Shown: positions 7,428 through 38,097 of the stretch, piece by piece
Layout of the letters: each line of letters opens with the position of its first letter
Position numbering within the stretch: the stretch's first letter is position 1
Source: Phaeosaccion multiseriatum
Taxonomy: Eukaryota > Protista > Ochrophyta, other classes
Assembly: GCA_965112735.1 (NCBI GenBank)
Contig: OZ218950.1
Coordinates: 6,386,001-6,450,000, forward strand
Direction of reading: 5' to 3'
Length of the DNA: 64,000 nt
Position numbers and translations under genes: made by a program
Notes under the pieces: model-generated
The model's input: only the letters and a program-made list of their open reading frames with translations
The model's database searches: none
Told to the model about the DNA's origin: nothing

Positions 7428-9275
7428 ATGAGGGGGAGGACGGGCGATGCTACGCCTGGGGCAGGGACAGCGGCTCTAAGGACTGTGGCCAGCCTCATCT
7501 CTGACAAAGCTCTGTGGGGTGTGTGCAAGAAGGTCGATGAGGTCACTGCCCGCACTCTGAGGATCAACGCCGAAATGCCCCAGCGTGTCCAGCAGCGCAT
7601 GCTGAGTCTGCTGAAGCGGCAGCAGGAAGAGGAGGGGAGAAGCGCTGCTTTGGCTTGGCCCACCGCGACTATGCTTACTGCCTCTGCTGCTGCAGCTGCT
7701 GGCTGTGAGGAATGTCCTGCAGTGGGAGCGCGAAGATCGGGGAGGATTCGGGCGAGGCAGGAAGCGCAGCAGCAGCAGAAGCGGCGTGGGAAGAGGCAGC
7801 GCAATGAGGCTGGACCTCCTGATGAGGGGGGCTTGTTTCGCGTGGTGTCTGTGGAGCTCGGTCGTAAGGCCAAGACCTACCAAGATTCGAAGGACGACGC
7901 CAAAATATCTGCTGATGAGGCTCTCGTAACGAAGGTATTGGCGCTGCTGCCAGCATCGGTCAAGCTTGTGCGCTTCTCTGGGGAGTTCAATCAGGCCAAC
8001 GTATGTCTTCCTGGCACAGTTATGGAAGTGGAGCTCGGGTGGCAATTCAACAAACACATCAATCTCCCTGCCTTTCTGAAGAAGATCAAGTTTGAAAAGG
8101 ACTCGAAGTTCAATCAGCAGTTGGTCCTTCCTTTTGGTGTGGAGGAGGTGCAGATGGGGAGTGACTTCAACCTCCCTCTGGACCTGCCTGCCTCGCTGAA
8201 GAAGATCAAATTTCATGAGGACTCGGAGTTCAATCGGCAGTTGGTCCTTCCTTGTCGTGTGCAGGAGGTGGAGATTGGGGATGACTTTAACCTCCCTCTT
8301 GAGCTGCCTGCCTCTGTGAAGAAGATCAGATTTGGCTATCACTTCAATCAGCAGTTGGTCCTTCCTTGTGGTGTGGAGGAGGTGCAGATGGGGCGTGACT
8401 TCAACCTCCCTGTGGAGCTGCCTGCCTCTCTGAAGAAGATCAAGTTTCATCCGGACTCGGATTTCAATCAGCAGTTGTTCCTTCCTTGTCGTGTGGAGGA
8501 GGTGGTCATGGGGCTTGACTTTAACCTCCCTCTGGAGCTGCCTACCTCTCTGAAGAGGATCAGATTTAGCTTTCACTTTAATCAGCACGTGGTCCTTCCT
8601 TGTGGTGTGGAGGAGGTGGTGATGGGGCGTGACTTTAACCTCCCTCTGGAGCTGCCTACCTCTCTGAAGAAGGTCAGATTTGTTGCGTACTCCAAGTTCA
8701 ATGAGCAGTTGGCCCTTCCTTGCGGTGTGGAGGAGGTGCAGATGGGGGGTGACTTTAACCTCCCTCTGGAGCTGCCTACCTCTCTGAAGAAGATTAAGTT
8801 TCATCAGTACTCCAAGTTCAGTCAGCAGCTGGTCCTTCCTCCTGGTGTGGAGGAGGTGCAGATGGGGGATGACTTTAACCTCCCTCTGGAGCTGCCTGCC
8901 TCTCTGAAGAAGGTCAGATTTGGCTGGAAGTTCAATCAGCACGTGGTCCTTCCTTGTGGTGTGGAGGAGATGCAGATGGGGCGTGACTTTAATGTCCCTC
9001 TGGACCTGCCTGCTTCGCTAAAGAAAATCGAGTTTGATTATTCCTCCAGCTTCGATCAGCAGTTGGTCCTTCCTTGTGGTGTGGAGGAGGTGCGGATGGG
9101 GCCTGTCTTTAATCGCCCTCTGGAGCTGCCTGCTTCTCTGCGGACTCTGATACTGGGACCGCGTTACACCTGCCCTTTGGAGAGCCTGCCTGCTGGCCTT
9201 AGGACGCTTTGGGTTGGGATGGACGTCCCGCTGCCTGCAGATCTACCCGAGGGGCTAAAGGTGATTCACTTATAA
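7428..9275 (+). CDS. FNIP-repeat (LRR-like) protein 1, 615 aa, intronless, 9 double repeats
   Basis: Alternating FNQQLVLPCGVEEVQMGxx / FNLPLELPASLKKIKFx(3,5) units; C-cap YTCPLESLPAGLR. Confidence 0.92.
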   Translation: MRGRTGDATPGAGTAALRTVASLISDKALWGVCKKVDEVTARTLRINAEMPQRVQQRMLSLLKRQQEEEGRSAALAWPTATMLTASAAAAAGCEECPAVGARRSGRIRARQEAQQQQKRRGKRQRNEAGPPDEGGLFRVVSVELGRKAKTYQDSKDDAKISADEALVTKVLALLPASVKLVRFSGEFNQANVCLPGTVMEVELGWQFNKHINLPAFLKKIKFEKDSKFNQQLVLPFGVEEVQMGSDFNLPLDLPASLKKIKFHEDSEFNRQLVLPCRVQEVEIGDDFNLPLELPASVKKIRFGYHFNQQLVLPCGVEEVQMGRDFNLPVELPASLKKIKFHPDSDFNQQLFLPCRVEEVVMGLDFNLPLELPTSLKRIRFSFHFNQHVVLPCGVEEVVMGRDFNLPLELPTSLKKVRFVAYSKFNEQLALPCGVEEVQMGGDFNLPLELPTSLKKIKFHQYSKFSQQLVLPPGVEEVQMGDDFNLPLELPASLKKVRFGWKFNQHVVLPCGVEEMQMGRDFNVPLDLPASLKKIEFDYSSSFDQQLVLPCGVEEVRMGPVFNRPLELPASLRTLILGPRYTCPLESLPAGLRTLWVGMDVPLPADLPEGLKVIHL

Positions 9276-10347
9276 GGGATGACGTGACTTGACAGAATCG
9301 GAGGGGCACTCGAGGCCGAGAAAGAACGTTCAAGAGCGAGGCTGGGCAGGATGTGCATTCACATGAGAGCAGCAGCAGCAGCAGCAGCAGCTGCCGCCGC
9401 AGGGAGGAAGGAGCTGCCTCTTGAGAGTGAAGCGCCAAGGTGGATCAGGGTCAGGGCCAGAGGGTCAAGGGATGTTAGCACGGCTGAGTGTGAGGTTGGC
9501 CTCCATTGTCTTTTCGAATCGAGCGTGACTTCATGAGTGGGTGTGTCCATCCTCTGCTGGCAGATGGTGTCTAGGAATGCAGGCAAGGTGGTCATGGGCA
9601 ACAGCGGCAGCAGCAAGAGCAAGAAGAGCAAGAGTAAGAGCAACAACGAGGGAGGCGACGGGAGGTGAAGCAGACAAGGGACTATAGATCCAAGCAGGAG
9701 GAGCAGCAGAAGCAGCAACAGCAGCAGAGCAAGAGGGTGAGGGGAAGCAGCGGCACGGCGTGGGTGAAGGGCAGAGGGGCAGAGTGGCTGCAAGGGCAAG
9801 AGGAGGCAAGGGGGGGCGATGCGGGTGAGAGACAGGAGCTCAAGCAAGAGGAGGAGGAGCAGCGGGAGTGAGAGGGGTGGGAGGAGGAGTAGCGGAGGAT
9901 CAAGGGCAGCAGCAAAGCAGGAGGGGTGTTTGTCCTCCACGATGTCAAGGCGGGGGCAAGCGCGGCATCCTTCGTCAGACCCCCGGGGGAGCAAGGGCGT
10001 TCGAAAGAGCCCCCCACTTGCAAGCCCTCGGCGGTGTGGGAGGAGGCAGCGGCGGTGCCAGCAGACGGAGGAGGACGACCACGAACGACGAGAGCAGGAG
10101 AGGTGCATGGTGGGTCGAGGGCAGAGCTTCGACCCCCTTCAGCGGAGGGGATCTGAGCGGCAGGAGAAGAAAGCCCAGCGCCAGCAGCACCGGCGACCCT
10201 CCCGACGCGCAGCCCCAGCCTCATCTTCAGCGGCGGCACTGCTTGGGTCAAGGGCAGGAGTCGCGGCCTCGATGCCCGATACCCGAGACTCCACCCTCCC
10301 GCTCCTCCTCCCTGTCCCGCTACGGTGCGTCTGCAGGGGCTTGGGAC

Positions 10348-11229
10348 ATGCCCCCCGGGGGAGAGGGAGCATCTCCTCTGCCTGGTCCGGATGGAGACAA
10401 AGGTGAGCGATCATTTCATGCGGACATCGAGTCAACCCCCCCCCCCCCCTTCTCCTTGCGCTGTATGGGAAGGGGATGTGTGTTGCTCTCTCACTTGTCT
10501 CGAACTGACTTGCAGGCACGCACTCTCTGACCCCTCCTCTTTGTTCTGTCGCTCTCTCTCTCTGTCGCCCTCTTCATCTCTTTCGTGTGCCTCTCGTTCT
10601 CCAACCCTCTGTTGCATTGCTCGAAATCTGCTTTTCTCCCCCTCCCCTGTCGCCCTCTCCTTCTCTCCCTCTCTCCTTCTCACTCGCGGTATCTCTCTCA
10701 CACATAATTGTCCCTGTCTTTGCCTCCCTCTCTTTCCCTCCCTCCCTCCCTCCCTCTTCTCTGCTGCTGCATCGCTCCATTTGTGATCTCTACTCACAGC
10801 TCGGGCCTACATGTCTCTGAACGACCTCTCTTCCGCCAGCGCTCACCTCGCCAGGGCACTAGAGGTGGACCCTCACTGTCCAGGAGGTGCGTTGGTGGGG
10901 AGGGAGGATGGCAGTGGATAGGGGGGGGGGGGGAGGACGAAGTGGGCAAGCAGAGGAAGGACCATTCGCATTCACTCACAGCCTTAATTGCGTTTGTTGA
11001 TCTGTTGTGTCACCCCTTTCGCCCCTCCCCTCCCCTCCCTCCAGCCTACGTGGACCTTGGTCAGTTGTGCACGCAGGAGGGCAAGGTGGAGGAGGCGCTT
11101 TGTCTGTACGAGAAGGGCGTGCTCCACTCGCGCTACTTGCACGAGCTGCACGATGCCATGACGTGTCTGCTTGTGGCCAAGGAGCACCTCGCTGCCAAGG
11201 AGGAGCTGGGGATGGGGGACGAGGAGTGA
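10348..11229 (+). CDS. Tom70-like C-terminal TPR module, copy 1 (exons ..10402, 10800-10886, 11045-11229); partial or chimeric gene
   Basis: Phase-compatible GT-AG joins give ARAYMSLNDLSSASAHLARALEVDPHCPGAYVDLGQLCTQEGKVEEALCLYEKGVLHSRYLHELHDAMTCLLVAKEHL, resembling the last TPRs of Tom70. Start uncertain. Confidence 0.55.
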
Positions 11230-11682
11230 AGCAGGAGGGGAGGGGAGGGGAGGAGAGGGGAGGGGGGGAGAGAGGGCGGAGGGGAGAGGAGTAGCGTAGA
11301 GTAAGGTCTGGTGTACTCTTGGCAGCAGGACTGAGAGGAGCGTCCAGGAGGGCGTGTCAGTCGCAGGGGGCAGAGAAGCTCAGCAACAGCGGAGCCGTGC
11401 AAGTACTCAGAGTAGGGAGAGGCAGAGGCAGCAATTACCCTATCAATGAATCAAAGGCCCTCTTCAGCCCCGAATCCGCTTAGCTTCCATCCATCTGTGA
11501 CTGGATTGGCTGGATTCTACCCGAGGACCTTGCCCACAGCTTGGCAGACGGAGCAGCAGCCAGCAGGGCAAGAGAGAAGAGGAAGTAGTAGCAGTGGTGG
11601 CAGAGGACGGAGAAGGGCGGTCCCAAGGAGGGCCCCAGGACAGAAAGAAGAGATTCGCCGGGGGAAGGTCGAGGGGGGAGAA

Positions 11683-13167
11683 ATGAGGGGGGAGAGGGGC
11701 GATGCTACGCCTGGGGCAGGGACAGCGGCTCTGAGGACTGTGGCCAGCCTCATCTCCGACAAAGCTCTGTGGGGGGTGTGCAAGGAGGTCGATGAGGTCA
11801 CCACCCGCACTCTGAGGATCAACGCCGAAATGCCCGAGCGTGTCCAGCAGCGCATGCTGAGTCTGCTGAAGCGGCAGCAGCAAGAGGAGGGGAGAAGCGC
11901 TGCTTTGGCTTCGTCTTCCGCGACTATGCGTACTGCCTCTGCTGCTCCATCTACTGGCTGTGAGGAAAGACGTACTGCGGAGGGAGCGCGAAGATCGGGG
12001 AGGATTCGGGCGAGGCAGGAAGCGCAGCAGCAGCAGGAGCGACGTGGGAAGAGGCAGCGCAATGAGGCTGGATGTCCTGGTGAGGGGGGATTTTTTCGCG
12101 TGGTGTCTGTGGAGCTCGGCCTCAGCACGTACCTACATTCTGAGTACGATGCCAAGGTTTGTGCTGATGAGGCTCTCGTAGGGAAGGCACTCGCGCTGCT
12201 GCCAGCATCGGTCAGGCTTGTGCGCTTCTCTGAGTACTTCAATCAGGCCGACGTATGTCTTCCTGGCACAGTTGTGGAAGTGGAGCTTGGCCGGAAATTC
12301 AACAAACACATCGATCTCCCTGCCTCTCTGAAGAAGATCAAGTTTGAAATGGACTCGGATTTCAATCAGCAGTTGGTCCTTCCTTGTGGTGTGGAGGAGG
12401 TGCAGATGGGGTATGCCTTTAACCTCCCCCTGGAGCTGCCTGCCTCGCTGAAGAACATCAAATTCGGCTATCTCTTCAATCAGCACGTGGTCCTTCCTTG
12501 TGGTGTGGAGGAGGTGGAGATGGGGTATTACTTCAACCTCCCTCTGGATCTGCCTGCCTCCCTGAAGAAGATCAAGTTTTATAGGTACTCTTCCTTCAAT
12601 CAGCAGTTGGTCCTTCCTTGTGGTGTAGAAGAGGTGGAGATGGGGCGTGACTTTAACCGCCCTCTGGACTTGCCTGCCTCTCTGAAGAAGATCAAATTTG
12701 CCTATCGCTTCAATCAGCACGTGGTCCTTCCTTGTGGTGTGGAGGAGGTGCAGATGGGGCGTGACTTTAACCTCCCTCTGGAGCTGCCTGCCTCTCTGAA
12801 GAAGATCAAATTTTATGAGGGATCGGAGTTCAATCAACAGTTAGTCCTTCCTTGTGGTGTGGAGGAGGTGGAGATGGGGTATCACTTTAACCTCCCTCTG
12901 GAGCTGCCTGCCTCTCTGAAGAAGATCAGACTTGGTTATCACTTCAATCAGCAGATGGCTCTTCCTTGTGGTGTGGAGGAGGTGCAGATGGGGTATGACT
13001 TTAACCTCCCTCTGGAGCTGCCTGCTTCTCTGCGGACTCTGAAACTGGGATGGAATTACACCTGCCCTTTGGAGAGCCTGCCTGCTGGACTGAGGAAGCT
13101 TTGGGTTAGGGCCAACTGCCTGCTGCCTGCAGATCAACCCGAGGGGCTAAAGGTGTTTCGCTATTAA
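11683..13167 (+). CDS. FNIP-repeat protein 2, 494 aa from the conserved ATG (an in-frame upstream ATG at 11446 gives 573 aa), 6 double repeats
   Basis: Same architecture as FNIP1; the ATG at 11683 is the one conserved in all paralogues. Confidence 0.92.
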   Translation: MRGERGDATPGAGTAALRTVASLISDKALWGVCKEVDEVTTRTLRINAEMPERVQQRMLSLLKRQQQEEGRSAALASSSATMRTASAAPSTGCEERRTAEGARRSGRIRARQEAQQQQERRGKRQRNEAGCPGEGGFFRVVSVELGLSTYLHSEYDAKVCADEALVGKALALLPASVRLVRFSEYFNQADVCLPGTVVEVELGRKFNKHIDLPASLKKIKFEMDSDFNQQLVLPCGVEEVQMGYAFNLPLELPASLKNIKFGYLFNQHVVLPCGVEEVEMGYYFNLPLDLPASLKKIKFYRYSSFNQQLVLPCGVEEVEMGRDFNRPLDLPASLKKIKFAYRFNQHVVLPCGVEEVQMGRDFNLPLELPASLKKIKFYEGSEFNQQLVLPCGVEEVEMGYHFNLPLELPASLKKIRLGYHFNQQMALPCGVEEVQMGYDFNLPLELPASLRTLKLGWNYTCPLESLPAGLRKLWVRANCLLPADQPEGLKVFRY

Positions 13168-14246
13168 GGGGTGACGAGCCTCAAGTGAATTGGAGGGGCA
13201 CTCGAGGCCGAGAATGAAGGGTCAGGGGAGAGACTGGGCAGGAGAGAAGTCGACGCTGTATGGAGGTGTATTCACAGAAGAGCAGCGGCAGGGAGGAAGG
13301 AGCTGTACCGTAACAGTGAGGCGCCAAGGTGGGTCAGGATCAGGGTCAGAGGGTCAGGGGGTCAGCCATGGCATGGTTGAGAGTTAGGGCCGCCCTCAAT
13401 CTCTCTCGACCTTGGTCAGACCCCCCGGGGAGGTAGGGAGAGAGAAAGAGGGCCCCCTACTTGCAACCCCTCGGCGGTGTCGGAGGGGGCAGCGGCGATG
13501 GCCGCAGAGGGAGGAGGAGGAGGAGGAGGAGGAGGAGGAGGAGGAGGAGGAGGAGGAGGAGGAGGAGGAGGGGCAGGGGAGGAGCATGATGAATGGACGG
13601 CAGCTTCGACCCCCTTCAACGGAGGGGCTCTCAGCAGCAGCAAAAGGAAGCCCAGCACCAGCAGCACCGGCGACCCTCCCGACGCGCAGCCCCAGCCTCA
13701 TGTTCAGCGGCGGCACTGCTTGGGCCAAGGGCGGGATTCGTGGTCTATGTGCCCGATCCCTGATAGTCCACCCTCCCGCTCCTCCTCCCTGTCCCGCTAC
13801 GGGGCGTCTGCAGGGGCTGGTACACGCCCCCCGGGGGAGAGGGAGCCTCGTGTCTGCCTGGTCCGGATGGAGACAAAGGTGAGCGATCATTTCATGCGGA
13901 CATCGAGTCAACCCTCCTCCCATTCTCCTTGCGCTGTATGGGAAGGGGATGTGTGTTGCTCTCTCGCTTCTCTCGAACTGACTTGCCGCCACGTACTCTC
14001 TGACCCCTCCTCTTTGATCTGGCTCTCTCTCTCTGCTCTCTCCATCTCTTTTACCGTCTCTCTGTGTGCCTCTCTTTCTCCAACCCTCTGTTGCATTGCT
14101 CGAAATCTGCCTTTCTCCCCCTCCTCTGTTGCCCTCTCCTTCTCACTCGCGGTATCTCTCTCTCACACATAATTGTCTCTCTCTTTCCCTCCTTCTCTCT
14201 CTCTTTTCTGCTGCTGCATCGCTCCATCTCTGATCTCTACTCACAG

Positions 14247-14861
14247 CTCGGGCCTACATGTCTCTGAACGACCTCTCCTCCGCCAGCGCTCACCTCGCCA
14301 GGGCACTAGAAGTGGATCCTCACTGTCCAGGAGGTGCGTTGGTGGGGAGGGAGGATGGCAGTAGATGGGGGGGGGGGGGGGGGGGGGGACTATGTGGGGT
14401 TGCAGGGAAGACAAGCAGAGGAAGGGAAGTGCCTTCGTGGGGTGTCAAGCGGGCAGGAGGTGGAGGCGGGGGCGGCGGCGGCGGCGGCGGCGGCGGAGGA
14501 GGAGGAGAAGGAGGCGGTGGGTTGTCAAGGATGAAGAGCAGAGGAAGGACCACTCACAGCCTCACCCACTTCAGGCTCCTCTCCTGTTCCTAATTGCACG
14601 GTCGTCCGTCTGTTGTGCGCCCCCTTCGCCCCTCCCTCCCTACGTCCTTCGCTCCCCTCCCCTCCCCTCCCTCCAGCCTATATGGACCTTGGTCAGTTGC
14701 GCATGCAGGAGGGCAAGGTGGAGGAGGCGCTTTGTCTGTACGAGAAGGGCGTGCTCCACTGGCGCTACTTGCACGAGCTGCACGATGCCATGACGTGTCT
14801 GCTTGTGGCCAAGGAGCACCTCTCTGCCAAGGAGGAGCTGGGGATGGGGGACGAGGAGTGA
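14247..14861 (+). CDS. Tom70-like TPR module, copy 2 (exons 14247-14333, 14677-14861; upstream exon frameshifted)
   Basis: Same two exons, open; the upstream exon ending 13878 is out of phase relative to the other copies. Confidence 0.45.
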
Positions 14862-15115
14862 AGCAGGAGGGGAGGGGAGAGGAGTAGCGTAGAGTAAGGT
14901 CTGGTGTACTCTTGGCAGCAGGACTGAGAGGAGCGTCAAGGTGGGGAGCGCCGCAGGGAAGCTCAGCAACAGCGGAGACGTGCAAGTACTCAGAGTAGGG
15001 AGAGGCAGAGGCAGCAATTACCCTATCAATGAATCAAAGGCCCTCTTCAGCCGCGCTCTACCCGTACCCGCTTAGCTTCCATCCATCTGTGACTGGATTG
15101 GCTGGATTCTACCCG

Positions 15116-15373
15116 TCGGCTCCAGGCGACAGAAGCCGTAGCCCCCTCCAGGCTTCGGGCTTCTGGCCGCAGGCCAGCGCAGGCTTCTGGCCGCAGGCCA
15201 GTGGTCAGGCTTCAGGCTTCTCAGGCTGGGAGAAAAATGGGGGACTTGGCAGGCTTCTCGCTACTTTCTGCAGGCTTCTGGCCGCAGGCCAGCCGCAGGC
15301 TTCTTATTTTCGGCCGCAGGCCGCCGCAGGCTTCTGCTTTATCGGGGGCCCGAGAAACCTCGCCTGGAGCCGA
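15116..15373. mobile_element. 258-bp MITE, 14-bp TIR TCGGCTCCAGGCGA, 6-bp TSD TACCCG
   Basis: Perfect TIRs with TACCCG on both sides. The empty site GGATTCTACCCGAGGACC is present upstream of FNIP1, 2 and 4. Internal CAGGCTTC repeats. Confidence 0.92.
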
Positions 15374-15394
15374 TACCCGAGGACCTTGCCCACA

Positions 15395-15945
15395 TCCGAC
15401 CAAGAATATGGGGACGGCCACAAATCACTTATGATTGATGTCACGCTCACAGATGCCACCAACATCACCAATCGGGCCAAGGCATCGAAGGAGGCACTCG
15501 CGGCAGCCAAGAAGGCTGAAGCAACCAAGCGGACGAGATATGGGGTGCCACAGGTAGGCATGGAAGGCCAGCGTGGGGATATCCACTATGACCCCACGAG
15601 GTACCACCTCGTCCCTTTCGCAATGGAACAGCAAGGCGCATTTGGTCCTTCTGCTCAGTCGTTTATGAAAACCCTTGCCACCCCACATGGCTGGGGGGCA
15701 CGAACATCTGGACATGAGGGCTTATGCGAGAGCTGTTTGCGTCATTCGGCGGCGATTAGCCGTAGCGCTCCAGCGGGCCCGACACGAACGATCGGTTCGA
15801 CACAGGATCCTGGCTGGTATCAACTTTGTTCCAATGGGGAGAACTGATGAGTCAGAGGGACACGACCTCGAGGGCTAAGTTCCCCCGGGGCGGTGAGACA
15901 TTACTTTTAGACAACCATAGATGGCACTTAAGGGTGTAATATATT
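15395..15945 (+). mobile_element. 5'-truncated non-LTR retrotransposon (CRE-like), restriction-like endonuclease C-terminus plus 3' UTR, frameshifted
   Basis: LMIDVT..AAKKAEATKRTRY..LVPFAMEQQGAFGPSAQSFMKTLA, then after a frameshift RRLAVALQR; ends in an AT-rich tail; absent from the homologous site of FNIP1, 2 and 4. Confidence 0.8.
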
Positions 15946-16107
15946 ACAGCCTTTTTTTGGCAGACGGAGCAGCTAGTAGGGCAGCGAGAGACGCAAGAGG
16001 GAAGAGGAAGTAGTAGCAGTGGTGGCAGAGGACGGAGCAGGGCGGTCCCAAGGAGGGCCCCAGGACAGAAAGAAGAGATTCGCCGGGGGAAGGTCGAGGG
16101 GGGAGAA

Positions 16108-17628
16108 ATGAGGGGGGAGACGGGCGATGCTACGCCTGGGGCAGGGACAGCGGCTCTGAGGACTGTGGCCAGCCTCATCTCCGACAAAGCTCTGTGGGGG
16201 GTGTGCAAGGAGGTCGATGAGGTCACCACCCGCACTCTGAGGATCAACGCCGAAATGCCCGAGCGTGTCCAGCAGCGCATGCTGAGTCTGCTGAAGCGGC
16301 AGCAGCAAGAGGAGGGGAGAAGCGCTGCTTTGGCTTCGTCTTCCGCGACTATGCGTACTGCCTCTGCTGCTCCATCTACTGGCTGTGAGGAAAGACGTAC
16401 TGCGGAGGGAGCGCGAAGATCGGGGAGGATTCGGGCGAGGCAGGAAGCGCAGCAGCAGCAGGAGCGACGTGGGAAGAGGCAGCGCAATGAGGCTGGACCT
16501 CCTGGTGAGGGGGGCTTCTTTCGCGTGGTGTCTGTGGAGCTCGGTCTCAAGACCTACCGAGATGATGACGAGGAGCTCGGCCTCGGGACGTACCAAGATG
16601 ACGACGCCAAAGTATCTGCTGATGGGGCTCTCGTAGGGAAGGTACTCGCGCTGCTGCCAGCATCGGTCAGGCTTGTGCGCTTCTCTGAGTCTTTCAATCA
16701 GGCCGACGTATGTCTTCCTGGCACAGTTGTGGAAGTGGAATTCGGGCGGCACTTTAACAAACACGTCGATCTCCCCGCCTCTCTGAAGAAGATCAAGTTT
16801 GTGGAGTCCTCGGAGTTCAATCAGCAGTTGGTCCTTCCTTGCGGTGTGGAGGAGGTGCAGATGGGGTGTGACTTTAACCTGCCTCTGGAACTGCCTGCCT
16901 CTCTGAAGAAGATCACATTCGGTTGGAGCTACAACCAGCACGTGGTCCTTCCTTGTGGGGTGGAGGAGGTGGAGATGGGGTTTGACTTTAACCACCCTCT
17001 GGACCTGCCTGCTTCTCTGAAGAAGATCAGATTTGCCTATCTCTTCAATCAGCACGTGGTCCTTCCTTTTGGTGTGGAGGAGATGGAGATGGGGTATCGC
17101 TTTAACCTCCCTCTGGATCTGCCTACCTCTCTGAAGAAGATCACATTCGGTTGGAGCTACAACCAGCACGTGGTCCTTCCTTGTGGGGTGGAGGAGGTGG
17201 AGATGGGGTTTGACTTTAACCTCCCCCTTGAGCTGCCTGCCTCGCTGAAGAAGATCAGATTTGGCTATGACTTCAATCAGCACGTGGTCCTTCCTTGTGG
17301 TGTGGAGGAGATGGAGATGGGGTATCGCTTTAACCTCCCTCTGGAACTGCCTACCTCTCTGAAGAAGATCAGATTTGATGAGGAATCTCGCTTCAATCAG
17401 CACGTGGTCCTTCCTTGTGGTGTGGAGGAGGTGGAGATGGGGGATGCCTTTAACCTCCCTCTGGAGCTGCCTGCTTCTCTGCGGACTCTGAAACTGGGAC
17501 GGTATTACACCTGCCCTATGGAGAGCCTGCCTGCCGGACTGAGGAAGCTTTGGGCTCGGACCAACTACCCGCTGCCTGCGGATCTACCCGAGGGGCTGGA
17601 GGTGTTTCGCTTGGAAGGGATGGCGTGA
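16108..17628 (+). CDS. FNIP-repeat protein 3, 506 aa, 6 double repeats
   Basis: Same architecture as FNIP1. Confidence 0.92.
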   Translation: MRGETGDATPGAGTAALRTVASLISDKALWGVCKEVDEVTTRTLRINAEMPERVQQRMLSLLKRQQQEEGRSAALASSSATMRTASAAPSTGCEERRTAEGARRSGRIRARQEAQQQQERRGKRQRNEAGPPGEGGFFRVVSVELGLKTYRDDDEELGLGTYQDDDAKVSADGALVGKVLALLPASVRLVRFSESFNQADVCLPGTVVEVEFGRHFNKHVDLPASLKKIKFVESSEFNQQLVLPCGVEEVQMGCDFNLPLELPASLKKITFGWSYNQHVVLPCGVEEVEMGFDFNHPLDLPASLKKIRFAYLFNQHVVLPFGVEEMEMGYRFNLPLDLPTSLKKITFGWSYNQHVVLPCGVEEVEMGFDFNLPLELPASLKKIRFGYDFNQHVVLPCGVEEMEMGYRFNLPLELPTSLKKIRFDEESRFNQHVVLPCGVEEVEMGDAFNLPLELPASLRTLKLGRYYTCPMESLPAGLRKLWARTNYPLPADLPEGLEVFRLEGMA

Positions 17629-18206
17629 CTTGACAGAATCGGAGGGGCACACGAGGCCGAGAAAGAACGTTCAAGAGCGAGGCTGGGCAGGATGTGCATT
17701 CACATGAGAGCAGCAGCAGCGGCAGCAGCAGCAGCCGCAGGGAGGAAGGGGCTGCCTCTTGAGAGTGAAGCGCCAAGCTGGATCAGGGTCAGGGCTAGAG
17801 GGTCAGGGGATCTTAGCACGGCTGAGTGTGAGGTTGGCCTCCATTGTCTTCTCGAATCGAGCGTGACTTCATGTGTGCGTGTCTCCATCCCCTGCTGGCA
17901 GATGATGTCTAGCAACGTAGGCAAGGTGCTCAGGAGCGGAGCAGCAAGAGCAAGAGGAGACAAGGAGGCGATGCGGACAAACTAAAAGAGCTCAAGCAAA
18001 CAGGATGAGCGGCATGGCAATAGTCATTCAGTCAGTCAGTCAGTCAGTCAGTAAATCGCCCTTGCGATGCGAAGGCGGAAGGAGGCAACAGCAGCAGTGG
18101 TTATGCCAGATTGTTCAGTTTCAGTTTTGTAGAGCCAAAACCAGCCTACAAAAGGTCAATCAAAAGGAAGCCAGTGTTTCTGTGGGGGGGCACCAAGCAC
18201 TTGTTC

Positions 18207-18238
<32 letters not shown>

Positions 18239-18626
18239 TACAGGTCCTCGCAACGCTCCATACGGGGCAGAGGGTAGGGGGGGGCGGGGCTGGGGGGCTA
18301 CCTATGTGTCTGTCTCCAGGAGCATTGGCCAGAGTACACACCAGACCGCACACCACAGTTCACAGCCCCGCAGTCAGTCAGTGAGTCAGTGGGAGCTCGT
18401 CCCTTGGAACCTTGGTCTCCGCCCCGCTCCTTTCGGGTCCAACGCGATGGATGTTCGCTGCACCATTCAAACTGCAATGCGCTGAGGTTTCTTTGTACAC
18501 AAGCGACATGATGCCACGGGGGCAGGCGTTACAACTCCACTCTCACCCTCCGTTGAGAGAGACACAATAGAGAGAGAGAGAGGAGAGAGTCCGCCAGTAA
18601 GTCGGTGGGAGAGTTCGGCCAGTAAG

Positions 18627-23989: not shown

Positions 23990-24119
23990 GGTCCAGCTAT
24001 CGTCCAAAGAGAGGGCGCCGACCTTTTTGGCCCCTATGACTCTCAATTTTTTATTATCGTACCGACTCTACAAGTCGATGTATTACTATTAGAGAGCGCT
24101 GTCTGGCCCAAGGGCAGAG

Positions 24120-26277: not shown

Positions 26278-26732
26278 CCTTCCTCCTCGTCTCTCCCTTC
26301 TTGCTCTCTCGTGTTCTACCCCTCTCTGTCTCTCTCTCGCTCGCTCGCTCTCGCTCTCGCTCTCCCCGACTCCCTCGCCCCCCGTATCCCCCCGGCCTCA
26401 CCCCGCCACGAGCTGCCATCCTCAACCTCTTGATCCTGCCCTTGACTCAATTCCTATAAATGCGACAGCCACCACGGTCAAACCGCCTTCCCCTGTTCTC
26501 GATCTTCGGGTGCTTCCGCTTGGCGTGGGGATGGGGTCTCGTCTTCTTGTGGTGCACGAGCAGCGACGGTAGAGCACGGGGCGCCCTGCTGTGTGCTCTC
26601 TCTCCACTGGAAGGGGAAGGGAGGCACAGCAGCGGGGAGGAAGCAACAGCAGCGGGGAGGAAGGGAGTGGAGAAGAAGCAGCAGGAGCAGAAGAAGCAAC
26701 AGCCAAGTCTCCCGGCGGCGATTGCACCTCGC

Positions 26733-29121: not shown

Positions 29122-29469
29122 ATGTGTCCGAAGTGTGTGTTCTGAGTGTTCTTTGCCCTGCAGAGGAGCAGCTGCAAGCACCACTGGCGTCCCTTACCAT
29201 CAGGAGGAGAAGCAAAGTAGCTGCACCACCGCCAGCCGCAGCAGCAGCAGCTGAATCAGGAGCGGACCATCCGCGGTACTCGCACAGGGCGGGGTAGAGC
29301 GAATTTTCGCGAATTCTCACACCCGTGAACGCAAAGTCCGCCCCCTTCTCTTGGACTTCAGCTCTTCTTTCCTTTCGACTTTGAAGGGGGGGGGGCATCG
29401 TCGTTGAAAGGCCTCGGAGGTGTGGGAGGAGGCAGCGGCGATGGCAGCAGATGGAGGAGGAGGACCACG

Positions 29470-30590
29470 ATGGGGAGGAGGAGGGGAAGGAGAGAACCAA
29501 TGTGGGTGGAGGGCAGAGCGACCATCCCCTTCAGCGGAGGGGATCTCAGCAGAAGTAGAATGAAGCCCAGCGCCAGCAGCACCGGCGACCCTCCCGACGC
29601 GCAGCCCCAGCCTCATGTTCAGCGGCGGCACTGCTTGGGCCAAGGGCAAGAGTCGCGACCTCGATGCCCGATCCCCGAGACTCCCCCCTCCCGCCCCTCC
29701 TCCCTGTCCCGCTACGGTGCGTCTGCAGCGGCTTGGTACGTGCCCCCCGGGGGAGAGGGAGCATCTCCTCTGCCTGGTCCGGATGGAGACAAAGGTGAGC
29801 GATCATTTCATGCGGACATTGAGTCAACCCTCCTCCCATTCTCCTTGCGCTGTATGGGAAGGGGATGTGTGTTGCTCTCTCACTTCTCTCGAACTGACTT
29901 GCCGCCACGTACTCTCTGACCCCTCCTCTTTGTTCTGTCGCTCTCCTCTCGCTCCCTCTCTCTGCTCTCTCTCCATCTCTTTTCCCCTCTCTCTGTGTGC
30001 CTCTCTTTCTCCAACCCTCTGTTGCATTGCTCGAAATCTGCCTTTCTCCCCCTCCCCTGTCGCCCTCTCCTTCTCTCCCTCTCTCCTTCTCACTCGTCTC
30101 CCTTCCTCCCTCTTCTCTGCTGCTGCATCGCTTCATGTCTGATCTCTACTCACAGCTCGGGCCTACATGTCTCTGAACGACCTCTCTTCCGCCAGCGCTC
30201 ACCTCGCCAGGGCACTAGAGGTGGATCCTCACCGTCCAGGAGGTGCGTTGGTGGGGAGGGAGGATGGCAGTGGATGGGGGGGGGGGGGGAGGACGAAGTG
30301 GGCAAGCGGAGGAAGGACCATTCACATTCACTCACAGCCTTAATTGCGTTTGTTGGTCTTTTGTGTGACCCCTTTCGCCCCTCCCCTCCCCTCCCCTCCC
30401 TCCAGCCTGCATGGACCTTGGTCAGTTGCGCATGCAGGAGGGCAAGGTGGAGGAGGCGCTTTGTCTGTACGAGAAGGGCGTGCTCCACTCGCGCTACTTG
30501 CACGAGCTGCACGATGCCATGACGTGTCTGCTTGTGGCCAAGGAGCACCTCGCTGCCAAGGAGGAGCTGGGGATAGGGGACGAGGAGTGA
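29470..30590 (+). CDS. Tom70-like TPR module, copy 3 (exons 29470-29794, 30156-30242, 30406-30590)
   Basis: Three exons in phase from ATG 29470; the first exon is low-complexity and non-TPR. Confidence 0.5.
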
Positions 30591-31042
30591 AGCAGGGGGG
30601 GAGGGGAGGGGAGAGGGCGGAGGGGAAAGGAGTAGCGCAGAGTAAGGTCTGGTGTACTCTTGGCAGCAGGACTGAGAGGAGCGTCCAGGAGGGGAGCGGC
30701 GCGTCAGTCGCAGGGGGCAGGGAAGCTCAGCAACAGCGGAGCCGTGCAAGTACTCAGAGTAGGGAGAGGCAGAGGCAGCAATTACCCTATCAATGAATCA
30801 AAGGCCCTCTTCAGCCCCCGAATCCGCTTGGCTTCCATCCATCTGTGACTGGATTGGCTGGATTCTACCCGAGGACCTTGCCCGCAGCTTGGCAGACGGA
30901 GCAGCAGCCAGTAGGGCAGCGAGAGACGCAAGAGAGAAGAGGAAGTAGTAGCAGTGGTGGCAGAGGACGGAGCAGGGCGGTCCCAAGGAGGGCCCCAGGA
31001 CAGAAAGAAGAGATTCGCCGGGGGAAGGTCGAGGGGGGAGAA

Positions 31043-33223
31043 ATGAGGGGGGAGAGGGGCGATGCTACGCCTGGGGCAGGGACAGCGGCTCTGAGGACTG
31101 TGGCCAGCCTCATCTCCGACAAAGCTCTGTGGGGGGTGTGCAAGGAGGTCGATGAGGTCACCACCCGCACTCTGAGGATCAACGCCGAAATGCCCGAGCG
31201 TGTCCAGCAGCGCATGCTGAGTCTGCTGAAGCGGCAGCAGCAAGAGGAGGGGAGAAGCGCTGCTTTGGCTTCGTCTTCCGCGACTATGCGTACTGCCTCT
31301 GCTGCTCCATCTACTGGCTGTGAGGAAAGATGTCCTGCGGAGGGAGCGCGAAGATCGGGGAGGATTCGGGCGAGGCAGGAAGCGCAGCAGCAGCAGGAGC
31401 GACGTGGAAAGAGGCAGCGCGACGAGGCTGGACCTCCTGGTGAGGGGGGCTTCTTTCGCGTGGTGTCTGTGGAGCTTGGCCTCAGCACGTACCTACATTC
31501 TGAGTACGATGCCAAGGTTTGTGCTGATGAGGCTCTCGTAGGGAAGGCACTCGCGCTGCTGCCACCATCGGTCAGGCTTGTGCGCTTCTCTGAGTATTTC
31601 AATCAGGCCGACGTATGTCTTCCTGGCACAGTTGTGGAAGTGGAATTCGGGTGGCACTTTAACAAACACATCGATCTCCCTGCCTCTCTGAAGAAGATCA
31701 AGTTTAAATGGTACTCGGAGTTCAATCAGCAGTTGGTCCTTCCTTGTGGTGTGGAGGAGGTGCAGATGGGGCGTCACTTTAACCTCCCTCTGGACCTGCC
31801 TGCCTCTCTGAAGAGGATCAAATTTCATGAGGAATCGGAGTTCAATCAGCAGTTGGTCCTTCCTTGTGGTGTGGAGGAGGTGGAGATGGGGCGTGACTTT
31901 AACGTCCCTCTGGAGCTGCCTGCCTCTCTGAAGAAGATCAAGTTTAGTTGGAAATTCAATCAGCAGGTGGTCCTTCCTTGTGGTGTGGAGGAGATGGAGA
32001 TGGGGCATGACTTTAACCTCCCTCTGGAGCTGCCTGCCTCGCTGAAGAAGATCAAATTCGGCTATCACTTCAATCAGCACGTGCTCCTTCCTTGTGGTGT
32101 GGAGGAGGTGGAGATGGGGTATGACTTTAACCTCCCTCTGGAGCTGCCTGCCTCTCTGAAGAAGATCAAGTTTGTAGGGCGCTCTTACTTCAATCAGCAG
32201 TTGGTCCTTCCTTGTGGTGTGGAGGAGGTGGAGATGGGGAGTGACTTTAACGTCCCTCTGGAGCTGCCGGCCTCTCTGAAGAAGATCAAGTTCTGCGGAG
32301 GATTTAATCAGCACGTGGTCCTTCCTTGTGGTGTGGAGGAGGTGGAGATGGGGCATGCCTTTAACCTCCCTCTGGAGCTGCCTGCCTCTCTGAAGAAGAT
32401 CAAATTCGGCTTTCACTTCAATCAGCATGTGGTCCTTCCTTGTGGTGTGGAGGAGGTGCAGATGGGGTTTGACTTTAACCTCCCTCTGGAGCTGCCTGCC
32501 TCTCTGAAGAACATCAAGTTCGGCGATCACTTCAATCAGCAGTTGGTCCTTCCTTGCGGTGTGGAGGAGGTGCAGATGGGGAATGCCTTTAACCTCCCTC
32601 TGGACCTGCCTGCCTCTCTGAAGAAGATCAAATTTTATGAGGGATCGGATTTCAATCAACAGTTAGTCCTTCCTTGTGGTGTGGAGGAGGTGGAGATGGG
32701 GGGTGACTTTAACCTGCCTCTGGAGCTGCCTGCCTCTCTGAAGAGGATCAAATTCGGCTATCGCTTCAATCTGCACGTGGTCCTTCCTTGTGGTGTGGAG
32801 GAGGTAGAGATGGGGCTTGACTTTAACCTCCCTCTGGAGCTGCCTGCCTCGTTGAAGAAGATCAGCTTTGGTAGCAAGTTCAATCAGCAGTTGGTCCTTC
32901 CTTGTGGTGTGGAGGAGGTGGAGATGGGGTATCACTTTAACCTCCCTCTGGAGCTGCCTGCCTCTCTGAAGAAGATCAAGTTTTATGAGTACTCGGATTT
33001 CAACCAGCAGCTGGTCCTTCCTTGTGGTGTGGAAGAGGTGGAGATGGGGTTTTACTTTAATCACCCTCTTGAGCTGCCTGCTTCTCTGCGGACTCTGAAA
33101 CTGGGACGGAAATACACCTGCCCTTTGGAGAGCCTGCCTGCCGGACTGAGGAAGCTTTGGGCTGGGACCAACTACCCGCTGCCTGCAGATCTACCCGAGG
33201 GGCTGGAGGTGTTTCGCTGGTAA
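31043..33223 (+). CDS. FNIP-repeat protein 4, 726 aa, 12 double repeats
   Basis: Same architecture; conserved ATG at 31043. Confidence 0.92.
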   Translation: MRGERGDATPGAGTAALRTVASLISDKALWGVCKEVDEVTTRTLRINAEMPERVQQRMLSLLKRQQQEEGRSAALASSSATMRTASAAPSTGCEERCPAEGARRSGRIRARQEAQQQQERRGKRQRDEAGPPGEGGFFRVVSVELGLSTYLHSEYDAKVCADEALVGKALALLPPSVRLVRFSEYFNQADVCLPGTVVEVEFGWHFNKHIDLPASLKKIKFKWYSEFNQQLVLPCGVEEVQMGRHFNLPLDLPASLKRIKFHEESEFNQQLVLPCGVEEVEMGRDFNVPLELPASLKKIKFSWKFNQQVVLPCGVEEMEMGHDFNLPLELPASLKKIKFGYHFNQHVLLPCGVEEVEMGYDFNLPLELPASLKKIKFVGRSYFNQQLVLPCGVEEVEMGSDFNVPLELPASLKKIKFCGGFNQHVVLPCGVEEVEMGHAFNLPLELPASLKKIKFGFHFNQHVVLPCGVEEVQMGFDFNLPLELPASLKNIKFGDHFNQQLVLPCGVEEVQMGNAFNLPLDLPASLKKIKFYEGSDFNQQLVLPCGVEEVEMGGDFNLPLELPASLKRIKFGYRFNLHVVLPCGVEEVEMGLDFNLPLELPASLKKISFGSKFNQQLVLPCGVEEVEMGYHFNLPLELPASLKKIKFYEYSDFNQQLVLPCGVEEVEMGFYFNHPLELPASLRTLKLGRKYTCPLESLPAGLRKLWAGTNYPLPADLPEGLEVFRW

Positions 33224-33600
33224 GGGATGACGTGCCTCAACTGAGTTGGAGGGGCCCTCGATGCCGAGTGTGAAGGGTCAGGGGAGAGAAGAAGACACTG
33301 CGTGGATTTGCATTCACAGCACAGCAGCAGCAGGGAGGAAGGAGCTGTACCGTAACAGGAAAGCACCAAGGTGGGTCAGGATCAGGGCCAGAGGATCAGG
33401 GGGTCATGGCATGGTTGAGAGTTAGGGCCGCCTTCATTCTCTCTCGACCTTGGTCAGACCCCCCGGGGAGGTAGGGAGAGAGAAAGAGCGCCCTCTACTT
33501 GCAACCCCTCGGCGGTGTCGGAGGGGGCAGCGGCGATGGCCGCAGAGGGAGGAGCCGGAGGAGGAGGAGGAGGAGGAGGGGCAGGGGAGGAGCATGATGA

Positions 33601-34882: not shown

Positions 34883-35155
34883 AGCAGGAGGGGAGGGGAG
34901 GAGAGAGGGCGGAGGGGAAAGGAGTAGCGTAGAGTAAGGTCTGGTGTACTCTTGGCAGCAGGACTGAGAGGAGCGTCAAGGTGGGGAGCGCCGCAGGGAA
35001 GCTCAGCAACAGCGGAGACGTGCAAGTACTCATAGTAGGGAGAGGCAGAGGCAGCAATTACCCTATCAATGAATCAAAGGCCCTCTTCAGCCGCGCTCTA
35101 CCCGTACCCGCTTAGCTTCCATCCATCTGTGACTGGATTGGCTGGATTCTACCCG

Positions 35156-35413
35156 TCGGCTCCAGGCGACAGAAGCCGTAGCCCCCTCCAGGCTTCGGGC
35201 TTCTGGCCGCAGGCCAGCGCAGGCTTCTGGCCGCAGGCCAGTGGTCAGGCTTCAGGCTTCTCAGGCTGGGAGAAAAATGGGGGACTTGGCAGGCTTCTCG
35301 CTACTTTCTGCAGGCTTCTGGCCGCAGGCCAGCCGCAGGCTTCTTATTTTCGGCCGCAGGCCGCCGCAGGCTTCTGCTTTATCGGGGGCCCGAGAAACCT
35401 CGCCTGGAGCCGA
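35156..35413. mobile_element. 258-bp MITE, second copy (TIR TCGGCTCCAGGCGA, TSD TACCCG)
   Basis: Appears identical to 15116-15373, at the same site. Confidence 0.92.
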
Positions 35414-35431
35414 TACCCGAGGACCTTGCCC

Positions 35432-35988
35432 ACATCCGACCACGAATATGGGGAGGGCCACAAATCACTTATGACTGATGTCACGCTCACAGATGCCACC
35501 AACATCACCAATCGGGCCAAGGCATCGAAGGAGGCACTCGCGGCAGCCAAGAAGGCTGAAGCAACCAAGCGGACCAGGTATGGGGTGCCACAGGTAGGCA
35601 TGGAAGGCCAGCGTGGGGATATCCACTATGACCCCACGAGGTACCACCTCGTCCCTTTCGCAATGGAACAGCAAGGCGCATTTGGTCCTTCTGCTCAGAC
35701 GTTTATGAAAACACTTGCCACCCCACATGGCTGGGGGGCACGAACATCTGGACATGAGGGCTTATGCGAGAGCTGTTTGCGTCATTCGGCGGCGATTAGC
35801 CGTAGCGCTCCAGCGGGCCCGACACGAACGATCGGTTCGACACAGGATCCTGGCTGGTATCAACTTTGTTCCAATGGGGAGAACTGATGAGTCAGAGGGA
35901 CACGACCTCGAGGGCTAAGTTCCCCGGGGCGGTGAGACATTACTTTTAGACAACCATAGATGGCACTTAAGGGTGTAATATATATCAT
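35432..35988 (+). mobile_element. 5'-truncated CRE-like LINE, second copy, flanked by ACCTTGCCC direct repeats
   Basis: Same RLE peptide and frameshift; ACCTTGCCC at 35423-35431 and 35989-35997 (TSD-like). Confidence 0.82.
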
Positions 35989-36156
35989 ACCTTGCCCGCC
36001 GCTTGGCAGACGGAGCAGCAGCCAGCAGGGCAGCGAGAGATCCAAGAGAGAAGAGGAAGTAGTAGCAGTGGTGGCAGAGGACGGAGCAGGGCGGTCCCAA
36101 GGAGGGCCCCAGGACAGAAAGAAGAGATTCGCCGGGGGAAGGTCGAGGGGGGAGAA

Positions 36157-38097
36157 ATGAGGGCGGAGACAGGCGATGCTACGCCTGGGGCAGGGACAGC
36201 GGCTCTGAGGACTGTGGCCAGCCTCATCTCCGACAAAGCTCTGTGGGGGGTGTGCAAGGAGGTCGATGAGGTCACCACCCGCACTCTGAGGATCAACGCC
36301 GAAATGCCCGAGCGTGTCCAGCAGCGCATGCTGAGTCTGCTGAAGCGGCAGCAGCAAGAGGAGGGGAGAAGCGCTGCTTTGGCTTCGTCTTCCGCGACTA
36401 TGCGTACTGCCTCTGCTGCTCCATCTACTGGCTGTGAGGAAAGATGTCCTGCGGAGGGAGCGCGAAGATCGGGGAGGATTCGGGCGAGGCAGGAAGCGCA
36501 GCAGCAGCAGGAGCGACGTGGAAAGAGGCAGCGCGACGAGGCTGGACCTCCTGGTGAGGGGGGCTTCTTTCGCGTGGTGTCTGTGGAGCTTGGCCTCAGC
36601 ACGTACCTACATTCTGAGTACGATGCCAAGGTTTGTGCTGATGAGGCTCTCGTAGGGAAGGCACTCGCGCTGCTGCCAGCATCGGTCAGGCTTGTGCGCT
36701 TCTCTGAGTCTTTCAATCAGGCCGACGTATGTCTTCCTGGCACAGTTGTGGAAGTGGAATTCGGGTGGCACTTTAACAAACACATCGATCTCCCTGCCTC
36801 TCTGACGAAGATCAAGTTTTGTCCGCTCTCGGATTTCAATCAGCAGTTGGTCCTTCCTTGTGGTGTGGAGGAGGTGCAGATGGGGCGTCACTTTAACCTC
36901 CCTCTGGACCTGCCTGCCTCTCTGAAGAGGATCAAATTTCATGAGCGATCTCACTTCAATCAGCAGTTGGTCCTTCCTTGTGGTGTGGAGGAGGTGGAGA
37001 TGGGGTATGACTTTAACCTCCCCCTGGAGCTACCTGCCTCTGTGAAGAAGATCAAATTCGGCTATCACTTCAATCAGCACGTGGTCCTTCCTTGTGGTGT
37101 GGAGGAGGTGCAGATGGGGGGTGACTTTAACCTCCCTCTGGACCTGCCTGCCTCTCTGAAGAGGATCAAATTTCATGAGCGATCTCACTTCAATCAGCAG
37201 TTGGTCCTTCCTTGTGGTGTGGAGGAGGTGGAGATGGGGTGTGCCTTTAACCTCCCCCTGGAGCTACCTGCCTCTGTGAAGAAGATCAAATTCGGCTATC
37301 ACTTCAATCAGCACGTGGTCCTTCCTTGTGGTGTAGAGGAGGTGGAGATGGGGTGTGCCTTTAACCTCCCCCTGGAGCTACCTGCCTCTGTGAAGAAGAT
37401 CAAATTCGCCTATCGCTTCAATCAGCACGTGGTCCTTCCTTGTGGTGTGGAGGAGGTGGAGATGGGGTGTGACTTTAACCTCCCTGTGGAGCTGCCTGCC
37501 TCGCTGAAGAAGGTCAGCTTTGGCTGGAAGTTTAATCAGCACGTGGTCCTTCCTTGTGGTGTGGAGGAGGTGCAGATGGGGGGTGACTTTAACCTGCCTC
37601 TGGAGCTACCTGCCTCTGTGAAGAAGATCAAATTCGCCTATCGCTTCAATCAGCACGTGGTCCTTCCTTGTGGTGTGGAGGAGGTGGATATGGAGGGTGA
37701 CTTTAACCTCCCTGTGGAGCTGCCTGCCTCCCTGAAGAAGGTCAGCTTTGGCTGGAAGTTCAATCAGCACGTGGTCCTTCCTTGTGGTGTGGAGGAGGTG
37801 GAGATGGGGGATGACTTGAACCTCCCTCTGGAGCTGCCTGCCTCTCTGAAGAAGATCATATTTGGCTATGACTTCAATCAGCAGTTGGTCCTTCCTTGTG
37901 GTGTGGAGGAGGTGGAGATGGGGAGTAACTTTTTTCACCCTCTTGAGCTGCCTGCTTCTCTGCGGACTCTGAAACTGGGATGGAATTACACCTGCCCTTT
38001 GGAGAGCCTGCCTGCTGGACTGAGGAAGCTTTGGGCTAGGATCGACTACCCGCTGCCCGCGGATCTACCCGAGGGGCTGAAGGTGTTTCGCTTGTAA
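36157..38097 (+). CDS. FNIP-repeat protein 5, 646 aa, 10 double repeats
   Basis: Same architecture; conserved ATG at 36157. Confidence 0.92.
   Translation: MRAETGDATPGAGTAALRTVASLISDKALWGVCKEVDEVTTRTLRINAEMPERVQQRMLSLLKRQQQEEGRSAALASSSATMRTASAAPSTGCEERCPAEGARRSGRIRARQEAQQQQERRGKRQRDEAGPPGEGGFFRVVSVELGLSTYLHSEYDAKVCADEALVGKALALLPASVRLVRFSESFNQADVCLPGTVVEVEFGWHFNKHIDLPASLTKIKFCPLSDFNQQLVLPCGVEEVQMGRHFNLPLDLPASLKRIKFHERSHFNQQLVLPCGVEEVEMGYDFNLPLELPASVKKIKFGYHFNQHVVLPCGVEEVQMGGDFNLPLDLPASLKRIKFHERSHFNQQLVLPCGVEEVEMGCAFNLPLELPASVKKIKFGYHFNQHVVLPCGVEEVEMGCAFNLPLELPASVKKIKFAYRFNQHVVLPCGVEEVEMGCDFNLPVELPASLKKVSFGWKFNQHVVLPCGVEEVQMGGDFNLPLELPASVKKIKFAYRFNQHVVLPCGVEEVDMEGDFNLPVELPASLKKVSFGWKFNQHVVLPCGVEEVEMGDDLNLPLELPASLKKIIFGYDFNQQLVLPCGVEEVEMGSNFFHPLELPASLRTLKLGWNYTCPLESLPAGLRKLWARIDYPLPADLPEGLKVFRL

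Follow-up and report, generated by a model that had tools for sequence, protein, structure and literature searches.

Two codons per repeat vary at their first two letters only in a young FNIP/FGxxFN gene cluster of Phaeosaccion multiseriatum

How can two neighbouring codons of a repeated gene segment change time and again while their third letters stay the same? The question is raised by a stretch of 64,000 nucleotides from the ochrophyte Phaeosaccion multiseriatum (GenBank assembly GCA_965112735.1, contig OZ218950.1, positions 6,386,001 to 6,450,000), called the window below. It contains five related genes whose products are built of alternating half-repeats of two types, A and B. Each A half ends in a pair of variable codons (the di-codon), and this pair always has the form NNT-NNC. 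An initial annotation of the DNA had pointed out the pattern and had put it down to extreme selection or to a targeted or templated mutational mechanism. The explanation favoured here, at a probability of about 0.75, is strong diversifying selection on very young, homogenised FNIP repeats in which the T and the C were inherited from a founder pair of codons.

The five open reading frames (ORFs) all lie on the same strand, between 7.4 and 38.1 kb of the window, and encode leucine-rich repeat (LRR) proteins:

7428 to 9275, plus strand: gene 1, FNIP/FGxxFN LRR; ORF of 615 amino acids with a Pfam FNIP match and 9 A-type units
11446 to 13167, plus strand: gene 2, FNIP/FGxxFN LRR; shared MRG..TGDATPG start at 11683, 6 A-type units
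16108 to 17628, plus strand: gene 3, FNIP/FGxxFN LRR; 506 amino acids, 6 A-type units, matches Crov588
30845 to 33223, plus strand: gene 4, FNIP/FGxxFN LRR; shared start at 31043, 12 A-type units
35992 to 38097, plus strand: gene 5, FNIP/FGxxFN LRR; shared start at 36157, 10 A-type units

Each ORF encodes three parts: some 185-195 N-terminal residues, then half-repeats in an alternating array, and an LRR-like C-terminal cap. The A half reads FNQ[QH][LV]VLPCGVEEV[EQ]MG followed by two variable residues, and the B half reads FNLPLELPASLKKIKF followed by three or five. The variable codons are thus numbers 18-19 of the A half and 17-19 or 17-21 of the B half, and nearly all amino-acid variation is found there. 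At the DNA level the A-type di-codon stands in the context …GTGGAGGAG…ATGGGG-6 nt-TTYAAC, with some variants; the exact ATGGGG prefix is present in 41 of 43 units, and the two variants are ATTGGG and ATGGAG.

The units were called by protein motif, independently of the DNA pattern, which gave 43 A-type half-repeats in the five ORFs (9, 6, 6, 12 and 10). The first and the last di-codon are:

8160 to 8165, plus strand: first variable di-codon, AGT GAC; codons 18-19, the xx of (M/F)GxxFN
37924 to 37929, plus strand: last variable di-codon, AGT AAC

All 42 di-codons after the first lie at unit start + 51 to + 56. Codon 18 is NNT in 43 of 43 units, with 11 different codons: TAT (9), CGT (8), GGT (5), GAT, TGT and TTT (4 each), AGT (3), CTT and CAT (2 each), CCT and AAT (1 each). 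Codon 19 is NNC, again in all 43 units, with seven codons: GAC (27), GCC (6), CAC (4), TAC and CGC (2 each), GTC and AAC (1 each). Both codon lists agree exactly with those of the initial annotation. The 21 distinct di-codons can be joined in a shortest network of 21 single-base steps, of which 12 are at position 1, 9 at position 2 and none at position 3, so the earlier statement that third positions do not change here holds as well. Silent changes in the neighbouring scaffold, also reported then, are indeed present, mostly in the B half (TTT/TTC, TCT/TCG/TCC, CTG/CTA).

The cluster genes belong to the FNIP/FGxxFN family of LRR proteins. Pfam FNIP (PF05725) matches gene 1 with an E-value of 4.5e-57 and gene 4 with 7.6e-84; the scores are 190 and 276 bits against a gathering cut-off of 21, over 8 and 17 stretches of the two proteins. 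Gene 3 matches Crov588 (PDB 6nyr) with an E-value of 1.2e-66, and in this alignment both MGxxFN and FGyhFN fall on FGxxFN. Crov539 (PDB 7zal) is matched as well (E 7.5e-17). The family motif LxxLxFGxxFN...(L/I/W)P can be recognised in both halves, as LKKIKFgyhFN...LP in B and as VEEVeMGxxFN...LP in A. The di-codon thus encodes the xx of FGxxFN in the A half. Across the family, variation is greatest at the two residues that separate FG from FN, and in relatives of solved structure they lie on the rim of the concave, presumed ligand-binding face (PMC9525666). A role of the xx surface in ligand binding is putative here.

The cluster resembles other FGxxFN proteins such as Crov588 and Crov539 (PMC9525666) in its LxxLxFGxxFN...LP layout, in having its most variable pair between FG and FN, and in forming a large lineage-specific family. 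It differs from them in several ways. The repeats are 19 or 21 residues long instead of 22 and are of two types in alternation; the A type has M where FG has F; the units are nearly identical in their nucleotide scaffold; and the genes are chromosomal, their host is a GC-rich protist, and no Pfam family matches the N-terminal part of their products. The hypervariability of xx at the amino-acid level has already been published (PMC9525666), and the codon-level view, with its NNT-NNC rule, is the addition made here. The nearest database proteins are 27% identical, too distant for codon comparison, and exact-pattern scans of metagenome and viral contigs for relatives gave no match.

How fast do the two codons change? 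The counts, of a parsimony type and made on repeats, come from minimum spanning trees of B+A units, with both length classes added together. Positions 1 and 2 of the di-codon show 32 and 27 changes on four sites, or about 15 per site. The corresponding values are 2.2 per site for third positions of the A scaffold, 4.6 for third positions of the B scaffold and 0.8-1.4 for second positions of the scaffold. The four di-codon letters thus change 3-7 times faster than scaffold third positions. Within the A scaffold, position 2 (0.8 changes per site) changes about a third as often as position 3, and the scaffold is therefore under purifying selection.

The closest pair of units gives the same contrast in miniature:

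36892 to 37011, plus strand: 120-nt B+A unit; nearest copy at 37126-37245, with only two bases different

Both differences are at position 2 of a di-codon letter triplet, at 37007 and 37010, so that TAT GAC in one unit stands against TGT GCC in the other. Diversifying selection on the A-type xx codons is supported by this within-genome repeat pattern, from which we infer it.

The rate contrast has arisen among genes that are very young copies of each other. At four-fold degenerate sites of the N-terminal parts, the divergence of genes 4 and 5 is 0.000 (0 of 106 sites), that of gene 2 from genes 4 and 5 is about 0.03, and that of gene 3 is 0.04-0.06. Gene 1 is the most diverged paralogue, at 0.06-0.13 from the other four. 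The N-terminal parts lie on the plus strand at 7428-7985, 11683-12237, 16108-16692, 31043-31597 and 36157-36711 in genes 1-5.

Genes 4 and 5 were compared over 30875-32060 and 35989-37174 of the window. In the roughly 820 bases upstream of the repeats (5' flank and N-terminal coding part) there are 10 differences, or 1.2%. The repeats begin with a very different picture:

31706 to 31720, plus strand: variable patch in the first B half-repeat of gene 4; five codons, with 8 of 15 bases different from gene 5

The next two B patches differ at 5 and 7 bases, and in each of two di-codons two of the four letters differ. Between the first two patches lie 111 identical scaffold bases. A contrast of this kind suggests either patch-sized conversion from other members of the family or extremely strong selection.

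Under the favoured explanation, all A halves would go back to a single recent founder unit with T and C at the ends of its xx codons; it probably had a YRT codon and then GAC. The scaffold, with its silent sites, would be kept nearly uniform by duplication of units, unequal crossing-over and gene conversion. At the four letters, replacement mutations would then be fixed or retained by diversifying selection that favours new binding surfaces. Silent changes at third positions would gain nothing and would stay as rare as they are elsewhere in the A scaffold. Replacements through the third position would be intrinsically few, owing to the genetic code, and a change of T to C at codon 18 would add a CpG in a genome that is depleted of it.

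Several observations bear on these steps. The xx codons of the 19-residue B half are mostly NNT (16 of 24) and NNC (18 of 24), with TAT CAC the commonest pair, which fits an ancestral xx of that form. At codon 18, the classes YRT and RRT are complete, with four codons each in 23 and 13 units; YYT is represented by three of its four codons, in 7 units, and RYT not at all. That the five missing codons should include an entire class has a probability of about 0.01. This set looks like a walk of point mutations from a single YRT founder, from which RYT needs two transversions. The same set would also result if T, I, A and V were filtered out. As for CpG, a change of T to C at codon 18 would create one in 34 of 43 units, and the observed/expected ratio of CpG in the window is 0.62.

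The genetic code also limits what the third position can offer. Position 3 accounts for about 15% of the viable replacement neighbours of the observed codons, all of them transversions. No such replacement is possible from CGT, GGT, CTT or CCT; TAT leads to stops only, and TGT to one stop and W. From the other codons, transversions at position 3 lead to E, Q, L, K or R. Most of these changes are conservative (D/E, H/Q, F/L, N/K), apart from the stops reached from TAT and TGT. Given the 15% share, the probability that none of at least 21 replacement steps falls at position 3 is at most 0.033.

How unusual is the pattern, then? The third position is invariant in 5 of 33 scaffold codons (4 of 17 in the A half), and the probability that two specified codons are both invariant there is about 0.02-0.06. 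Among scaffold codons that end in a pyrimidine (Y), 5 of 17 have no T<->C variant; for two codons both to lack a silent T<->C change, the probability is 0.09-0.14. Simulations were also run, as a coalescent of the 43 units with a codon model for each codon, and only runs that matched the observed diversity were kept. When the neutral rate is taken from pairwise silent diversity, an omega of about 100 is needed and the pattern has a probability of about 0.004-0.01. When it is taken from the count of silent events, the diversity is recovered with an omega of about 10-20 at codon 18 and of 3-5 at codon 19. Both calibrations are inexact, since the site spectrum leans towards rare variants. A kappa of 3 was estimated from scaffold third positions. 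The pattern was picked post hoc, from about 11 hypervariable codon columns and in a scan of very many windows. It is real, and roughly at the 1% level it is unusual under simple models with selection only.

These simulations and further observations weigh against the favoured explanation. With the silent-event calibration, simulations that favour every amino-acid change equally give the full pattern in 0-0.4% of runs; with a preference for radical changes and a kappa of 3, the share is 1-3%. The initial annotation had proposed selection-only simulations as a check on its idea of a dedicated mechanism; they give the full pattern in at most 3% of runs, and so count only weakly against such a mechanism. 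The notion that recency and the genetic code together make the pattern trivial was dropped on the same figure. Some extra amino-acid preference, or luck, is needed beyond simple selection. B patches change at all three codon positions, and position 3 there changes about as often as positions 1-2; its share is 24 of 73 steps, against 0 of 21 in the A di-codon (Fisher p 0.001). Finally, E, K, Q and W are found in B patches and in the cap units and never at the A di-codon. Possible sources of the contrast between A and B are amino-acid filtering at the A slot, a more recent homogenisation of the A halves (third-position diversity is 0.09 in the A scaffold and 0.19 in the B scaffold), or chance.

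The cap units are A-like units that also carry an xx pair:

7986 to 8045, plus strand: capping A-like unit of gene 1, FNQANVCLPGTVMEVELGWQ; equivalents at 12238, 16693, 31598 and 36712

In genes 1-5, in order, their xx codons are TGG CAA, CGG AAA, CGG CAC, TGG CAC and TGG CAC. These are not NNT-NNC, and position 3 differs among the five genes.

Four other explanations can be set beside the one favoured here. Variants of the di-codon and of the B patches may have been brought in by short conversion tracts from a large, genome-wide pool of nearly identical units; the identical scaffold would hide the ends of the tracts, and NNT-NNC would be the limited, older set of variants in the pool, itself shaped by selection. 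Such shuffling would explain how genes 4 and 5 can have no four-fold difference in their N-terminal parts and strongly different patches separated by 111 identical bases. Also in its favour, the similarities between the flanks of the genes are mosaic, and GCC at codon 19 combines with five different states of codon 18. A large unit family is also seen in reads. The evidence consists of short Logan contigs over 7400-13250 of the window from four runs (X1, X2, X4 and X5), in which di-codon variants were not listed. In every run, thousands of contig pieces at least 90% alike fall on the repeat arrays, and in all four the summed contig depth over the arrays is up to several hundred times that of the unique flanks. 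Elsewhere in the genome there must thus be hundreds of units of this family. On the other hand, no donor of any patch is found in the window, shuffling merely shifts the question of third-position invariance to the pool, and a large protist population under strong selection could show the same local contrast. Taken as a whole, we regard shuffling as unlikely, with a small but real chance of being right. It is harder still to credit some further constraint, acting on the two third-position letters or on which amino acids can be reached, whether exclusion of E, K, Q, W and M, avoidance of CpG, codon preference or a signal in RNA or DNA; we consider it improbable. Such a constraint would explain why naive selection models under-predict the invariance. 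It would also fit the depletion of CpG (0.62) and the quiet third positions of A codons 13-19, and the absence at codon 18 of T, I, A and V, which are all reachable within NNT, suggests filtering of amino acids. Codons ending in T and in C are about equally used in the cluster genes, however, so codon preference is weak; avoidance of CpG does not apply to codon 19, where C is followed by T; and ORFs antisense to the arrays, described below, are not conserved in all five genes.

The two remaining explanations invoke mutation. A dedicated templated or targeted diversifier, similar to a diversity-generating retroelement (DGR) or of another kind, could rewrite positions 1-2 of both codons in each repeat. 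Variation that is confined to NNY mimics adenine mutagenesis of AAY codons, and the pattern is rarer than simple selection models predict. As in a DGR, the variable codons of the cluster are all NNY, so that they give no stops and many amino acids. The parts and marks of such a system are missing, however. Among the ten largest non-FNIP ORFs of the window (small or spliced genes left out), none encodes a reverse transcriptase or deaminase domain. No non-coding copy of an AATAAC template was found in the window, and a search of the window for ATGGGGAATAACTT with up to two mismatches matched only the coding units themselves. The scaffold adenines (AAT, CAG, GAG GAG, ATG) are kept, position by position, in 40-43 of the 43 units. 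The earlier observation that they are invariant is essentially correct, and with it the view that a classical DGR is unsupported; its proposed template search, done here within the window, found no AAT-AAC copy. DGR-type adenine mutagenesis is ruled out by these adenines and by the lack of a template or reverse transcriptase in the window. Further differences from a DGR are the eukaryotic host, the 43 dispersed two-codon targets across five genes in place of one variable region, and a codon set that is not randomised: 11 of 16 codons are used, at uneven frequencies and with a transversion class missing. Other xx slots of the same proteins do vary at position 3. DGRs are not known from eukaryotic nuclear genomes, and a dedicated diversifier of any kind is barely plausible here. 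Of the two possibilities left open by the initial annotation, selection has gained from the rate contrast, from the closest pair and from the restriction of variation to replacement letters, which selection predicts, and a special mechanism is without support. An untemplated local hot spot, for instance downstream of the GGGG run and acting without selection, would account for changes packed into five bases beside a G run. It is rejected because the middle T never changes: neither that T nor the final C is affected in any of at least 21 steps, where position 3 should have received a third of the changes (p about 2e-4). Nor is there a single mutational signature, since each of the four bases is found at positions 1 and 2, and we give the hot spot next to no credence.

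The reads offer two smaller observations. Run X5 stems from a different sample and a different study; in the unique parts it is nearly identical. At place 8627 in the same run, a paralogue reads AAC ACA behind ATGGGG, which is not NNT-NNC; the agreement is 0.68 and the consensus a weak one of three pieces, so it is given little weight.

The layout of the cluster also tells of its history. An ORF of 272 residues without a Pfam match lies between genes 2 and 3 (15029-15847) and again between genes 4 and 5 (35069-35887). Positions 14853-15152, which run into the start of this ORF, are 97% identical to 34893-35192, and the regions upstream of genes 4 and 5 are also 97% alike. The cluster is therefore a mosaic of duplications and conversions.

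The N-terminal part of 185-195 residues gave no Pfam family even at an E-value of 10, and no F-box or other domain was found in it. Between paralogues, changes are as frequent at its codon positions 1-2 as at position 3 (for instance 0.09 and 0.10 per site when gene 1 is set against the others), so this part is either relaxed or evolving fast in its own right. A basic stretch, RRGKRQR, is found in it.

Three of the arrays are faced by ORFs on the other strand, codon for codon opposite the repeats and 388-488 residues long:

7476 to 8942, minus strand: antisense ORF over the array of gene 1
15973 to 17403, minus strand: antisense ORF over the array of gene 3
31493 to 32659, minus strand: antisense ORF over the array of gene 4

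There is none over gene 5. The antisense ORFs are not kept in all five genes because CTA and TTA codons in the sense strand break them. They are most likely a by-product of GC-rich repeats in which the sense codons TTA, CTA and TCA are rare.

The window as a whole has about 58% GC and is rich in microsatellites. TpG/CpA are mildly in excess (1.10/1.16) alongside the depletion of CpG, which is compatible with cytosine methylation or another CpG-specific bias. Genes 3 and 4 are about 13 kb apart (17700-30800). The ten largest non-FNIP ORFs of the window encode lipoate/biotin-ligase-like, WRKY19-type zinc-finger repeat, TPR and conventional LRR proteins. The following features were located:

20836 to 21127: simple repeat between genes 3 and 4, ACTC
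24292 to 24577: simple repeat between genes 3 and 4, AGGGG
24885 to 25619, minus strand: conventional LRR ORF
26460 to 28019: lipoate/biotin-ligase-like ORF (PF03099, E 1e-10)
40643 to 42922: ORF of 759 residues with at least five WRKY19-type zinc-finger repeats (PF24906, E 4e-38)

The last of these has an internal tandem repeat of 75 bp (40849-41056).

Comparable systems are found among receptor genes. In clusters of plant nucleotide-binding LRR (NLR) and other resistance genes, diversifying selection acts on exposed LRR residues, and the clustered receptor genes evolve in concert. Like them, the FNIP cluster consists of young paralogues in tandem, shows traces of unequal crossing-over or conversion, and has a conserved scaffold in which replacements are concentrated at a small number of exposed positions in each repeat. 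It differs in belonging to another class of LRR, in having no NB-ARC or other signalling domain, and in that selection is inferred from repeats within one genome. The variable lymphocyte receptors of lampreys likewise have an LRR scaffold whose concave side carries variable residues, a likeness drawn in the Crov paper itself (PMC9525666). They are assembled somatically from flanking cassettes, whereas in the cluster the diversity is in the germline, over complete genes, and no cassette system was seen.

Could third-position invariance nevertheless be the footprint of a diversification process that is aware of the codon register, by templated rewriting of the xx dinucleotides across hundreds of units or by a conversion system that swaps these letters alone? 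We hold this to be highly improbable. If it were true, the process would be an NNY-type generator of diversity outside bacteria and phages, and an NNT-NNC rule that held in hundreds of related units regardless of their age would point to something far more unusual than selection on young repeats.

With diversifying selection on inherited T- and C-ending codons as the favoured explanation, the locus provides a clean and compact case: a scaffold that is nearly frozen in its DNA, and two surface codons per repeat that move at their replacement letters only. This suggests that the FNIP proteins of this protist face pressure to recognise partners that change.

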